A stretch of 64,000 nucleotides of DNA from Bacillus subtilis subsp. subtilis str. 168. Its GTDB lineage: Bacteria; Bacillota; Bacilli; Bacillales; Bacillaceae. The stretch covers positions 2,728,001-2,792,000 of the forward strand of contig NC_000964.3 in assembly GCF_000009045.1 (NCBI RefSeq), read 5' to 3'. The position numbers and the translations under genes were made by a program. How positions within the stretch are numbered: position 1 is the first letter of the stretch; each line of letters opens with the position of its first letter. Positions 19,984 to 23,726 of this stretch are shown here, in pieces. Under the pieces are notes generated by a model that saw only the letters and a list, made by a program, of their open reading frames with translations, made no database searches and was not told the origin of the DNA.

Positions 19984-20817
19984 TTATTTGATTACAAAAT
20001 TACCGTACTCGTTTGAACGAACATGAATCGGTCCGTTTAGATTATAGTTGTTCTCCTTGGCGATAGAGCGAAGCACGTCCACACGGGCAACTGATTCTCT
20101 CCATTCGTCACGGGTGTCATGATTGGCCGGATTCATCAGATCGTCATAGCGTACGTCCAAGAATTTATTCAACCACTTCTTCTCGTCTATTCCGTCTTTA
20201 GGTGATCCGCCCGCTTTTTTGTTCGTACGTTTAATCAAGGCATAAAAAGAGTCAGGGTCATCACCATCGCCATGCTGAATAACCGTATCGTACATCACAG
20301 CTCTTGCCAATGCTGTTTTTAGTCCGGCATTATCCGATCGTTTCATGGCAGGCTGATAATACAAATGGTCATTTACTTTGTCTTGAGCGGCGCGAAATTC
20401 CTTATCATTTGCAAGCGACTTCCAGGCAGAAGCGAATCCCTTGAGATTGCTTGTATCATCGCTTTCTTCCTTGGCCAGACGGCGCAATTCAGGCAGATAC
20501 TTTTTCAGTTTGTTATTCGGAACTGCCTTTGTGTATACTTCCACTACTTCCAATGCATCCCCGGTAGCCGTTGTAAAGCCTGCCCGTCCGCATGTATAGC
20601 CTCGCCCGTCATCCAATCGCTCTACATATCCATATTGGATCTCCGTTGTGCCGTTTTCAAAGATACTTGTCAGCTGTTCCGCCCGGCGCTTTTGATCTTT
20701 ATTCAGTCCCGCCGCAAAAACCGTTTCGCTCATCATCAGGGTAAAAAACATGGTGAAAACAAGTAATGAGATCGCTGCTTTTTTCCAAAAATCTGCTTTT
20801 TGCATACTGATTTTCAT
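19984..20817 (-). CDS. csn: Secreted chitosanase (GH46)
   Basis: Signal peptide; SIFENGTT (Glu) and DDGRGYT.G..GF (Asp) catalytic motifs. Confidence 0.97.
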   Translation of the reverse strand: MKISMQKADFWKKAAISLLVFTMFFTLMMSETVFAAGLNKDQKRRAEQLTSIFENGTTEIQYGYVERLDDGRGYTCGRAGFTTATGDALEVVEVYTKAVPNNKLKKYLPELRRLAKEESDDTSNLKGFASAWKSLANDKEFRAAQDKVNDHLYYQPAMKRSDNAGLKTALARAVMYDTVIQHGDGDDPDSFYALIKRTNKKAGGSPKDGIDEKKWLNKFLDVRYDDLMNPANHDTRDEWRESVARVDVLRSIAKENNYNLNGPIHVRSNEYGNFVIK

Positions 20818-21089
20818 TTCACTTCCCCTTTCTAAATATTGTAAATACAGACTCAGTATACATGAAGAAACTGCCCTATTGTTGAAAATACATCAATTTG
20901 TCAATATTTTGAATCTAAAGTAATATAGCTTGAATCTTACTCTATTCATTGCCAATCAGCCTTAGCCCCTCTCACTGGGAAGGTCCCTTGATTTTCATAC
21001 TGCTTCAACTTTCATTAACAAGATGCCATAAGGCTTTACTCTATTTTATAATGGAAGTGATCATCGAAAATCGTTAGGGAGGTGATGTA

Positions 21090-21173
21090 ATGGCAAGCAA
21101 GATGAGAATGCCAGATTCCGCAACGTCCCATGCAAAGCCTACTATTGGGAAGGCGATACTTTGCATGGGGTAG
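21090..21173 (+). CDS. 27-aa leader ORF upstream of yraL
   Basis: Strong SD GGGAGGTGA at 21077-21085; MASKMRMPDSATSHAKPTIGKAILCMG*; TATAAT at 21047-21052 upstream. Confidence 0.5.
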   Translation: MASKMRMPDSATSHAKPTIGKAILCMG

Positions 21174-21248
21174 ACTTTCTAAAAGATCGCCCAAGTAAGC
21201 TTTTCTGATATAGTGGCTTTGCACCTTATTTGACATAAAAAAATAAGG
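21127..21248 (+). promoter_or_regulatory. Structured leader with alternative helices and an SD-sequestering stem
   Basis: Helix A 21127-37/21159-69 (11 bp); competing helix B 21131-45/21210-23 (14 bp, one bulge); helix C 21224-31/21241-48 covers AAGG of the yraL SD. Confidence 0.55.
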
Positions 21249-21259
21249 AGCTGGCAGAA

Positions 21260-21523
21260 ATGGCATATGTAAAAGCAACCGCTATTTTACCTGAAAAGCT
21301 GATATCGGAAATTCAAAAGTATGTTCAAGGAAAAACAATATATATCCCTAAACCTGAATCCTCTCATCAAAAATGGGGTGCGTGTTCAGGAACAAGAAAG
21401 CTGATCGATGACAGAAACGCTTCTATTAAAAAAGCATTTAAAAACGGCAAAACCATTCATCAATTATCTGATGAATATCACCTCTCTATTGAAACAATAA
21501 AAAAAATTGTCTACTCTAAATAA
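21260..21523 (+). CDS. yraL: Small Mor-like HTH protein (CD3324 family)
   Basis: LPEKLISEIQKYVQGKTIYIPK...LSDEYHLSIETIKKIVY. Confidence 0.85.
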   Translation: MAYVKATAILPEKLISEIQKYVQGKTIYIPKPESSHQKWGACSGTRKLIDDRNASIKKAFKNGKTIHQLSDEYHLSIETIKKIVYSK

Positions 21524-21659
21524 ACAAAACGGAAGCACTGATAAAAAATAATCAGTGCTTTTTATATGGCGAGTTTGTTTCTTAGTTATTTCCTGCATAT
21601 GATACCATTGGCCAATTGTGTAAAGTTAAGGGAGATGAGAAGAAAGGAAGGTCCTACAA

Positions 21660-22475
21660 ATGACGATAAACAATGGAACGTTGCAAGTACCCGGCGCGAA
21701 CATCCACTATCAGGTGCGTGGCTCTGGTCCAATCATTCTTTTGGTCCACGGAGGAGGCGGTGATGCCGACAAGTTCCATCATGTTGCCAATCATCTGGCT
21801 AACTGGTACACGGTTGTTACTTATGATCGCCGCGGCCATTCCCGCAGCAATCTCGCCAATCAGATTGAGGGTTACCGTGTGGAAACACACAGTGACGATG
21901 CTCACCGTCTTCTAGCCAAAATCACCAATAAGCCGGCCTATGTATTTGGAAGCAGCTCCGGGGCTGTTATCGGGCTTGATCTGTGCATACGCCATCCCGA
22001 ACAAGTACATGTCATGATCCCACACGAACCAATCTTATTGCAGCTTCTGCATGGAAATGAGCTGAAACAAGCCGAGCAATTCATGGAAGACCTTAAGAAA
22101 AATCATCGAAGTGAAGTCATTAAATTAATGTCAAGATTAGAGACAGACGAACAATCAAAGGCTGTCCTGACAAAGCGGCTTCTCGGCAATTCAACGTATT
22201 TCACTGAGTATGAAATTCAAGGAATTCTCAGCTATACATTAGATTTCGAAGCATTAAAAACTGTGTTTACATCTTCACCGATGAAGATACTCCCAGCTGG
22301 CGGAAGTGCTTCTCGGGAGCTTTTTCCTTATCGTTGCGCGAACGCCCTAGCGGAACAATTGGAAACAGAATGGGTTGAATTCCCCGGAAATCATACGGGG
22401 TACACAATGTACCATAAAGAATTTTCTGAGAGGTTACACGACATGTTAGAAAAAGAAAAGAAACATACGTGTTAA
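21660..22475 (+). CDS. yraK: Alpha/beta-fold hydrolase
   Basis: LVHGG, YDRRGHSRS, nucleophile elbow GSSSG, C-terminal PGNH. Confidence 0.92.
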   Translation: MTINNGTLQVPGANIHYQVRGSGPIILLVHGGGGDADKFHHVANHLANWYTVVTYDRRGHSRSNLANQIEGYRVETHSDDAHRLLAKITNKPAYVFGSSSGAVIGLDLCIRHPEQVHVMIPHEPILLQLLHGNELKQAEQFMEDLKKNHRSEVIKLMSRLETDEQSKAVLTKRLLGNSTYFTEYEIQGILSYTLDFEALKTVFTSSPMKILPAGGSASRELFPYRCANALAEQLETEWVEFPGNHTGYTMYHKEFSERLHDMLEKEKKHTC

Positions 22476-22882: not shown

Positions 22883-23245
22883 CTAATTGCATTTGTAACC
22901 GACAGGGCCGTCTGAACCTGTGTACACATATGTGTCAGACACATATCCAATATTCACGACACCCCGGGAATCTTTCCACTGGATTTGGTCCCAGATATTA
23001 CTCGTTCCATACTTCCCTGTAACAGTCGTTCCATAAGCGTAACAATAATAAGGAACACGGGAGCCACTCGGAATGGAAAGCATAATAGGATAATTTGTAC
23101 CAGGACCGCTGCGCATATTGACAGGCGCACCGCTGCTTGTTGAGACAGTAAAGTACTGAACGGCAAGTGCCTGACTGGAAAAAATGAATAAAGATGCAAT
23201 CATCACGGTTAACATACTCAGCATTTTCAGTTTAGTCAATGTCAT
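22883..23245 (-). CDS. yraJ: Secreted SH3b-domain protein (TTG at 23239 is an alternative start)
   Basis: Signal peptide ending ALA; VNMRSGPGT..., W..., GYVSDTYV; two Cys. Confidence 0.9.
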   Translation of the reverse strand: MTLTKLKMLSMLTVMIASLFIFSSQALAVQYFTVSTSSGAPVNMRSGPGTNYPIMLSIPSGSRVPYYCYAYGTTVTGKYGTSNIWDQIQWKDSRGVVNIGYVSDTYVYTGSDGPVGYKCN

Positions 23246-23291: not shown

Positions 23292-23726
23292 CTACCAGCT
23301 GCATTTAGGAACAACCGGACCGTCTGAGCCTGTATACATATATGTATCAGAGACAAATCCAGGAACGATCTCCCCGCTGGCAAGCGTCCGCTCTGTGTAA
23401 TTCCAAATATTGCTCGTTCCATACTTTCCAGTTACAGTTGTACCGGTTTTGTAGCAATAGATCGGGATGCGGGTTCCGCTCGGAATGGTCGTTACAATTC
23501 CCCAACTTGTACCTGGGCCGCTGCGCATGTTGACAGGAGCACCGCTGCTTGTTGAAACCGTATAATACTGAGCCGCAAGTGCATGGCTAGAAAAAATGAA
23601 CACAGATGCAATCATCACCGTTAGCATACTTAGCCTCTTTAACTTATTCACCTTATACCCTCCCCTTATAAATGCCGTACGTTTGACTTTCTTACATCCA
23701 GTTAAGGATTTACTTTCAGATACCAT
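23292..23726 (-). CDS. yraI: Secreted SH3b-domain protein, paralogue of YraJ (second in-frame GTG start at 23651)
   Basis: Same signal peptide and VNMRSGPGT/GFVSDTYM pattern; two Cys. Confidence 0.9.
   Translation of the reverse strand: MVSESKSLTGCKKVKRTAFIRGGYKVNKLKRLSMLTVMIASVFIFSSHALAAQYYTVSTSSGAPVNMRSGPGTSWGIVTTIPSGTRIPIYCYKTGTTVTGKYGTSNIWNYTERTLASGEIVPGFVSDTYMYTGSDGPVVPKCSW

Follow-up and report, generated by a model that had tools for sequence, protein, structure and literature searches.

Between csn and yraL on the Bacillus subtilis subsp. subtilis str. 168 chromosome lies a leader RNA that we read, with moderate confidence, as a ribosome-sensing translational attenuator controlling YraL, the predicted transcription activator of an adjacent resistance cargo gene. 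By the window we mean the whole 64,000-nucleotide (nt) stretch that was analysed (NC_000964.3, positions 2,728,001 to 2,792,000 of the forward strand); all positions below are those of this stretch, and loci of other origin used for comparison are labelled L plus a number. The genes of the neighbourhood are a yraN-like LysR regulator gene, yraM/PrpF, csn, yraL, yraK and yraJ/yraI. The gap that contains the element is bounded by csn (a GH46 chitosanase gene, minus strand, 19984-20817) and by yraL (plus strand, 21260-21523), the gene that the leader is predicted to regulate, which encodes an 87-aa CD3324-family, Mor-like helix-turn-helix (HTH) protein. Still on the plus strand, yraL is followed by an intrinsic terminator (21533-21565), a promoter-like block (21565-21632) and yraK (21660-22475), which encodes an alpha/beta-fold serine hydrolase and is the cargo gene in the window.

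The leader-yraL transcript would be driven by a TATAAT -10 box (21047-21052, plus strand) with a weak -35; a TATAAT-like box recurs in relatives, 10-45 nt 5' of the leader Shine-Dalgarno sequence (SD), in the consensus of the alignment described below. The leader SD itself (segment a, GGGAGGTGAT, 21077-21086, with its core GGGAGGTGA at 21077-21085 and 7 nt to the ATG) serves an open reading frame (ORF) of 27 codons closed by TAG (MASKMRMPDSATSHAKPTIGKAILCMG, 21090-21173). Box, SD and ORF are all present where the initial annotation had placed them. Inside the ORF, a start-codon-proximal hairpin, P0 (21091-21113), pairs UGGCA (segment b, 21091-21095) with UGCCA (segment b', 21109-21113); next come the pivot strand c (CCCAUGCAAAGCC at 21127-21139 and, after a bulged U21140, ACUAU up to 21145), a linker, segment d (GGCGAU, 21152-21157) and segment e (CUUUGCAUGGGG, 21159-21170), which makes up the last codons. 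Beyond the ORF lie segments f (AUCGCC, 21186-21191), g (GCUUUUCUGAUAUAGU, 21199-21214) and h (GGCUUUGCA, 21215-21223), hairpin i (CCUUAUUU/AAAUAAGG, 21224-21248) and the yraL initiation region (21245-21262), which consists of the SD AAGGAG (21245-21250), the spacer GCUGGCAGAA (segment j) and the AUG at 21260, all on the plus strand.

These segments offer c two partners. With e it forms a perfect 11-bp helix (21127-37/21159-69), as had been claimed; the 14-bp helix also claimed with 21210-23 has all its pairs (21131-39 and 21141-45), but it is interrupted by the bulged U21140 and not continuous. Hairpin i is a perfect 8-bp stem (21224-31/21241-48) that buries AAGG of the yraL SD, and the pairs G21221-C21251 and C21222-G21250 can lengthen it, both h nucleotides being otherwise paired with c, so that h serves either as the distal partner of c or, with 21250-21255, as an extension of the SD stem. 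Segment g pairs with the linker, as an extension of c, in the long-range fold or, when free, with the yraL start region (21256-64). Segments d and f form a further helix, which together with c:e makes an H-type pseudoknot topology; the d:f helix with its pseudoknot, segment g and the phylogenetic breadth reported below had no place in the initial annotation. The terminator scan of 21047-21260 found none and no T-run follows any of the leader helices. The leader folds better than its shuffles (z-score of the minimum free energy, MFE, -2.87; 1 of 200 shuffles as good), and the window holds a single instance of the c...e pattern, against none in 100 shuffles. That no named element was known here agrees with our searches: Rfam 15 gave no match to 21040-21260 even at E<=10 (noise only), and we found no literature on the element.

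The leader is widespread. A survey with YraL as the query, taking one genome per species, returned 425 relatives, and the upstream regions of the best 80 were compared; matching loci number about 800 overall (425 plus 370 confirmed), of which 160 were retrieved for comparison. The leader itself was compared in 166 loci, 81 from genomes and 85 from other sources including plasmid and metagenome copies, and pairing counts are based on alignment A3, which holds 123 non-redundant sequences after dereplication at 97.5%; the relatedness of these sequences would inflate p-values. The same leader of about 200 nt is conserved at the nucleotide level in all 81 genome loci of yraL homologues, in more than 15 genera (Bacillus, Metabacillus, Priestia, Peribacillus, Neobacillus, Gottfriedia, Oceanobacillus, Rossellomorea, Cytobacillus, Domibacillus, Sporosarcina and others). 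Copies also occur in Brevibacillus, Aneurinibacillus and Risungbinella, on plasmids of Paenibacillus, B. mycoides and Pseudalkalibacillus, and in 78 of 80 metagenome loci, the remaining two being cut by contig ends; together the 166 loci span Bacillaceae, Paenibacillaceae, Brevibacillus/Aneurinibacillus and Thermoactinomycetaceae. When viral contigs were scanned for the c...e...h pattern, 21 matches came up, all of them unrelated coding or other sequence and none adjoining a CD3324 gene. A distant homologue on a Clostridium butyricum megaplasmid (L086:2340-2512, 51% identical) is without the c/e/h RNA and has a strong-SD mini-ORF of its own, 18 codons long (MCKLEMYIINKSYRGLSL), in a leader whose fold has z = -3.8 and whose start codon is paired; control by an upstream ORF (uORF) may be a general trait of the CD3324 family, exerted by different RNAs in different lineages.

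Covariation upstream of CD3324-family genes, which the initial annotation had suggested looking for, is indeed seen: the ORF and the paired segments are present and compensatory changes preserve the pairing. Across the 123 sequences c:e is paired in 99.8% of cells, with double-sided changes at four pairs, and d:f in 99.5%, with four of six pairs compensated (GC to AU eight times, AU to UA six times, AU to GC twice), giving d/f variants such as GGCGAA/UUCGCC, GGUGAU/AUCACC, AGCGUUA/UAACGCU and GGCGGU/ACCGCC. The core of c:h is about 99% paired (CG to UA three times, GC to AU once), hairpin i is 95-98% paired and the pairs between h and the spacer (h:j) are kept in 88-98% of sequences; P0 covaries as well (GC/AU/GU and CG/UA), being paired in 94% of alignment A1 and 85% of A3. 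Several loci change more than one strand of the switch together: in L158, L159 and L162, c (G to A, CAUACAAAG), e (C to U, CUUUGUAUG) and h (C to U, GGCUUUGUU) co-change; in L088 and in L160 and L163 (L160/163 below) c (C to U, GCAAAGUC) changes with h (G to A, GACUUUGC); in L151 c and e have changed while h retains a G-U pair. Thus both alternative partners of c are under selection, which argues that the mutually exclusive helices, already proposed from the window, are a real switch, and the conservation of the h:spacer pairs in relatives bears out the proposal that h lengthens the SD-burying stem when it is free. Changes on one side only are almost all G-U-compatible (at columns 105/149, UG 84, UA 21, CG 18 and no unpaired case), and this restriction to wobble argues for pairing as RNA and against DNA operators.

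Both stems of the putative c:e/d:f pseudoknot covary, and its loops measure 10-15 nt (L1), 1 nt in 122 of 123 sequences (L2) and 11-23 nt (L3). The linker after c varies from 10 to 15 nt, and in the Peribacillus clade a 2-nt indel after c causes GGCGAUACUUUGCAUGGGG to be read in a different frame (GDTLHG instead of KAILCMG) with its nucleotides unchanged. Given that the frame after c is not conserved and the nucleotides are, e and d appear constrained as RNA and not as peptide. One of two copies in Priestia megaterium (L007:2803-3015), beside an alpha/beta hydrolase gene, is a natural variant devoid of d:f: a 5-nt deletion removes most of d (GGAAGG-----CTTTGC), and the leader ORF is longer, with c, e and h intact. 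A further complementarity exists between f (AUCGCC, 21186-91) and GGUGAU of the leader SD (21081-86), which resembles d (GGCGAU) and would pair with one G-U. RNAalifold prefers this pairing, but we set it aside as a conserved helix: it shows no covariation, both strands being fixed for other reasons. With d masked by a ribosome, f could nevertheless shut off the leader SD and so prevent additional loading.

The leader ORF is found in all 123 sequences, always with c inside it, and GGAGGTG of its SD is near-invariant. In 120 of 123 a near-perfect SD and a start codon set the frame in which c reads H-A-K-P, despite several in-frame indels of 3 or 6 nt before c, and in about 90% the ORF contains c, d and e, mostly with a length of 27-32 codons. 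The stop falls 2-14 nt after e in about 80% of sequences and inside e in three, with an overall range from the linker to beyond f; in about 9% (L070, L079, L088, L118, L129, L130, L151) it lies in the linker before d. As a side observation, d (AAGGCGAU) resembles an SD and e holds an AUG (21165-67), so that in these early-stop leaders a second mini-ORF could start there. We also considered a conserved arrest peptide, and rejected it: the constraints that act on c as RNA account for the conservation of HAKP, c is read in a different frame in L160/163, whose leader peptide is not conserved, and in Peribacillus the frame shifts after c. Judged from the variable stop positions and from the frame change in L160/163, a specific arrest peptide is unlikely.

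Predicted folding energies describe two states that compete. Pairing of the linker with g extends c:h to a long-range helix of about 22 bp, with a duplex energy of -27 kcal/mol (c:e, -19.6), and the nested MFE structure contains c:h in 109 of 123 sequences, with a median of 6.6 kcal/mol below the forced c:e fold. This difference omits d:f, which as a duplex contributes -10 kcal/mol; since nested folds leave it uncounted, the two states are plausibly near-balanced. Hairpin i is weak alone (-5.6 kcal/mol; -8.1 with the GC extension), and in the window the 3' domain is predicted to add 21199-206:21256-64 (which includes the AUG), 21216-18:21253-55 and 21221-22:21250-51 on top of it, for a total of -16.2 kcal/mol against -5.6. 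Opening the region from the SD to AUG+5 would cost 6.9 kcal/mol with g and h removed, as when c sequesters them, 13.6 with both free and 11.2 with both shuffled, and real g and h are costlier than shuffled ones in 79% of the 123 sequences. In the full-length leader, forcing c:e raises the opening cost by a median of 1.9 kcal/mol over a ribosome masking e (59 of 81 sequences). The conserved pairing of h with the spacer explains the conservation of GCUGGC after the yraL SD. Elsewhere the partners move: h pairs as CUUUGC with the spacer GCAAAG in Gottfriedia and as UUUGCC with GGCAAA in the licheniformis group, and the register of g:start pairing differs by clade, CAUUUCUG being in many clades the exact reverse complement of CAGAAAUG. 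Because of such register shifts, counts of covariation in MAFFT columns are uninformative for linker:g and g:start, and per-sequence folding was used instead.

What the leader would control is a putative regulator. YraL scores above the cut-offs of Pfam Mor (PF08765, 27.2 bits against 24.9) and of NCBIfam CD3324_fam (114.4 bits against 65), a family that comprises 720 clusters at 50% identity, and its AlphaFold2 model has a pLDDT (predicted local distance difference test) of 82 overall and above 90 in the C-terminal HTH; a fold search with this model gave no significant match: HTH domains ranked best, and Mu C scored E 0.31. Some CD3324-domain proteins (P0142, P0151, P0171, P0176, P0189 and others) measure 200-450 aa and carry the domain N-terminally, fused to other sequence. 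After yraL, the intrinsic terminator (AAGCACUGAU...AUCAGUGCUU and a U-run; stem 21533-60) has a stem conserved in sequence across genera (AGCACUGAU/AUCAGUGCU) with variable loops of 4-18 nt, and the block that follows (TATGGCGAGTTTGTTTCTTAGTTATTTCCTGCAT in the window) is also conserved: it appears as TATGGCGAGTTTGTTTCTTAGTYATTTYCTGCAT, in which lies an imperfect dyad ATGGCGA-N10-TAGTYAT, with TGTAAAGT about 25 nt further on. Terminator stem, block and TGTAAAGT are conserved whatever the cargo, FusB-like or hydrolase (L001-L084), and 21533-21632 looks like a YraL-dependent promoter or another regulatory element. A small ORF after the terminator (21566-21763) was dismissed as not conserved, reading ATG TAA in L009. 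The conserved terminator and promoter-like block between yraL and yraK suggest that yraK is probably controlled indirectly, by YraL and not directly by the leader. The initial annotation had treated yraL-yraK as one translationally controlled unit, which the intervening terminator (21533-60 and its T-run) and block speak against; its translational attenuator stands as far as the anatomy goes (a translated ORF, exclusive helices, an SD stem and no leader terminator), but the direct toggling of hydrolase translation is not supported. Given that leader, yraL, terminator and block are conserved together, they travel as one cassette.

The cargo downstream of this cassette varies. At about 107 loci it is an elongation factor G (EF-G)-binding protein of the FusB/C/D/F family, in which both Pfam domains (EF-G-binding_N, FBP_C) exceed their cut-offs; with 110-144 bits they fall far short of the NCBIfam fusB/D/F cut-offs of 375-450, so that these proteins are homologues, not equivalogs. 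About 17 loci carry a YraK-like Abhydrolase_1 protein, as in the window, 15 a YetF/DUF421 membrane protein, five an HSL-type Abhydrolase_3 esterase that resembles chloramphenicol hydrolase but falls below the cut-off, two an APH-family phosphotransferase, two a nucleotidyltransferase, one an MBL-fold hydrolase and one, in Domibacillus antri (L065:3354-4082), a YebC/TACO1-family protein. Members of this last family have been linked to the relief of ribosome stalling, which fits a theme of translation stress. The yraK product itself matches Pfam Abhydrolase_1 at 1e-17 and has Staphylococcus aureus FphE as its best solved relative (2.4e-19); the earlier guess that this hydrolase might be drug-related is strengthened by the FusB-type and drug-modifying-type genes found at the equivalent position in most relatives. 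On the P. megaterium plasmid pBMV_2 (L171:1-3017) a FusB-like gene lies, without a yraL module, between genes for a macrolide-family glycosyltransferase and an alpha/beta hydrolase that is not close to YraK (BLASTP E 0.017). Downstream of yraK in the window, two tandem paralogous genes for secreted SH3_3-domain proteins (yraJ/yraI-like, minus strand, 22883-23245 and 23292-23726) are unrelated to the system.

Three competing pairings would thus make up the device: c:e with its d:f pseudoknot, the long-range helix of c and linker with h and g, and the pairing of h and g with the yraL initiation region, which would lengthen the 8-bp SD hairpin to a stem of about 13 bp and cover the AUG too. By default (state A), c would be held by e, and the free h and g would close off the SD, spacer and start codon of yraL, keeping it OFF. 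With this wiring (c:e, c:h and h with the translation initiation region, TIR; 1:2, 1:3, 3:4), freeing the TIR needs the capture of h by c and hence the removal of e. In the induced state (state B), a ribosome lingering at the last codons or the stop of the leader would cover e and d and leave c unmasked; c, together with the linker, would then capture h and g, leaving only the weak AU-rich hairpin, and yraL would be translated. Such a trigger, a dwell at the end of the ORF, is favoured by the position of most leader stops just past e, where c is already out of the ribosome. The cargo-gene context supports drug-stalled ribosomes as the putative inducing event: fusidic acid, which slows translocation and recycling, would be expected to cause the lingering, as may other inhibitors of translation. 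In a second tier, YraL would activate the promoter-like block beyond its own terminator and so switch on the cargo gene beside it; in most species this gene encodes an EF-G-binding protein of FusB type, and in the window the esterase-like YraK, which may deacylate drugs.

Several observations weigh against this attenuator model. In the early-stop leaders (about 9%), a ribosome at the stop would cover c and not e, so that a trigger by stalling over e is not universal. The difference in accessibility between the two states of the full leader is modest (the 1.9 kcal/mol given above), because upstream segments also pair with the spacer; moreover, the nested MFE structure is the putative ON state, so that the OFF state has to be assumed to be kinetically favoured or stabilised by the pseudoknot. 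The pairing of g with the start region shifts register between clades and shows no clean covariation. Because the cargo is diverse, fusidic acid specifically is a guess; DNA binding by YraL is suggested by a weak Mor match and an HTH model; and we found no paper on the regulation of yraL, yraK, BSU26870-80 or CD3324 genes.

Early-stop variants and cargo diversity keep alive a more general trigger, one of ribosome flux or translation stress, and the same RNA could work in this manner if traffic through c reset it to c:e (OFF) and lower traffic let c:h form (ON), be it under any translation inhibitor, under amino-acid starvation or with a ribosome stalled early in the ORF. The thermodynamic preference for the long-range fold in 109 of 123 sequences would suit such a sensor, as would the fact that traversing c is the only universal feature of an ORF whose stops are scattered from the linker to beyond f and whose peptide is lost in L160/163; the cargo types span many drug classes, and the whiB7 uORF is known to sense general translation stress (PMC10274678). 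We nevertheless judge a flux sensor unlikely, if the most serious of the alternatives, in view of a stop that looks positioned (within 2-14 nt of e in about 80%) and of the ON fold, which could not form if the ribosome stalled on c itself; it differs from the attenuator model in the trigger only, and not in the anatomy. The polarity could also be the opposite, the long-range fold being OFF, with c:h stacked on hairpin i and upstream b'/CUGCAGC paired to the spacer, and local c:e being ON, in which case active translation of the leader would promote that of yraL. Several MFE structures do pair the spacer GCUGGCAG with the leader upstream of c, closing a three-way junction, and pairing of b' (21109-14) with the spacer is possible in 84% of sequences, yet we rejected this helix as it does not covary and is lost without compensation in several close relatives. 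Furthermore, the initiation region is computed to be more accessible in the long-range fold in most sequences and the conserved h:spacer pairs need h to be free of c, which together make the inverted polarity quite improbable.

Alternatively, the c:e/d:f pseudoknot might be a small-molecule aptamer or a protein site, possibly for autoregulation by YraL, with the ORF incidental or auxiliary. This hypothesis is suggested by the extreme conservation of the stems and junction (GGCGAUACUUUGCAUGGGG; the single-nucleotide L2), by a pseudoknot topology that covaries in both stems and by an expression platform that sequesters an SD. However, triple constraints (two pairings and coding) account for the invariance of c, e and h, a pure riboswitch needs neither the SD and start nor the in-frame ORF that run through c in 120 of 123 sequences despite indels, there is no Rfam match up to E = 10, and the nature of the cargo suggests translation or drug stress and not a metabolite pathway; we therefore hold a ligand- or protein-binding RNA to be improbable. 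Lastly, TGCAAAG/CTTTGCA, present three times (inverted in c, direct in e and h), might form operators downstream of the promoter, bound in the DNA by YraL or another repressor: YraL is an HTH protein, and the three copies of the 9-bp motif co-vary in L158. But single-sided changes keep G-U wobble (e C to U or A to G with c unchanged), covariation in d:f and hairpin i involves unrelated sequences, and the ORF and its SD are conserved in a strand-specific manner, all of which renders DNA operators extremely improbable.

Taken together, the cassette (RNA switch, YraL and its target promoter) might be an undescribed, portable sensor-activator of Bacillales, flipped only by ribosomes that dwell at the end or stop of the mini-ORF, thus reporting translocation and recycling dependent on EF-G and RRF (ribosome recycling factor), and plugged before FusB-type factors, esterases, phosphotransferases, nucleotidyltransferases and MBL hydrolases; YraK would then be an inducible esterase inactivating fusidane-type or other acylated antibiotics. 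This comprehensive reading is tentative, and we put it forward as a possibility. A review from 2025 describes the control of FusB homologues as unknown (PMC12493156), and a module that precedes about 107 of them offers a testable answer. If correct, the model would provide a new attenuation wiring (a 5' pivot strand, a pseudoknot and a read-out where the ORF ends), a Firmicute analogue of the two-tier whiB7 logic and a function for the uncharacterised CD3324 family and for B. subtilis yraL and yraK. The conserved leader could also serve as a compact biosensor of translation inhibitors, and the module flags candidate intrinsic resistance genes in soil bacilli.

How does this device compare with known systems? 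The pUB101 fusB gene is reportedly governed by a leader-peptide attenuator, as O'Neill and Chopra are said to have found in 2006. In papers on staphylococcal fusB, induction is ascribed to ribosomes stalled by fusidic acid on a leader of 20 codons, with stalling proposed at the stop codon, the drug slowing translocation as well as recycling at the stop, the latter markedly when the ORF is short (PMC4838388; PMC12493156). The two leaders share a short ORF with a near-perfect SD (GGGAGGTGATGA), an association with the FusB family and an RNA rearrangement, predicted for yraL, that exposes a downstream ribosome-binding site. They have no homology in sequence or architecture: the pUB101 leader (MLKDITYLKLLDLEYKMLCS) has its complementary segments downstream of the ORF and lies directly before fusB, whereas the yraL leader would control an HTH regulator, places its pivot c 5' of both partners and adds the pseudoknot helix d:f. 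With ermC, cat and cmlA it shares the four-segment logic, in which ribosome occupancy selects the helices that sequester the second SD and start codon, and the lack of a terminator. However, those leaders are wired 1:2, 2:3, 3:4 and the yraL leader 1:2, 1:3, 3:4 (c:e, c:h, h:TIR), which predicts that the inducing ribosome sits on segment 2, at the ORF's 3' end or stop, and not on segment 1; also, its peptide appears dispensable (L160/163) and its target is a transcription factor.

Within B. subtilis, antibiotic-stalled ribosomes on uORFs induce resistance genes at bmrB-bmrCD, vmlR, tlrB and ytbDE (PMC13689557; PMC9226507), and yraL is not among the leader-peptide attenuator loci described for this species (PMC13689557). 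These attenuators come from the same group of organisms and some have SD-sequestering stems, but they rely mainly on intrinsic terminators, act directly on the resistance gene and have no sequence similarity to the yraL leader. For the second tier, phage Mu Mor/C offers a partial parallel: YraL exceeds the Pfam Mor cut-off, has a C-terminal HTH and is associated with an imperfect dyad upstream of the -10-like boxes of the cargo, although its fold match to Mu C is non-significant, and YraL is chromosomal and belongs to the separate CD3324 subfamily of NCBIfam. The closest likeness in logic is to whiB7 of Actinobacteria, where a uORF sensor is coupled to a resistance activator (PMC10274678): in both, a uORF that senses translation stress would lead to a small transcription activator and from there to intrinsic resistance genes. 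Yet whiB7 combines a terminator/antiterminator with a WhiB-type Fe-S protein, while the yraL system has no leader terminator, a predicted control of initiation, an HTH protein of Mor/CD3324 type and a single adjacent cargo gene. Judged by sequence and architecture, the yraL leader is a member of none of these families; its kind is known, being ribosome-mediated translational attenuation within a two-tier uORF control, and its predicted wiring is new.

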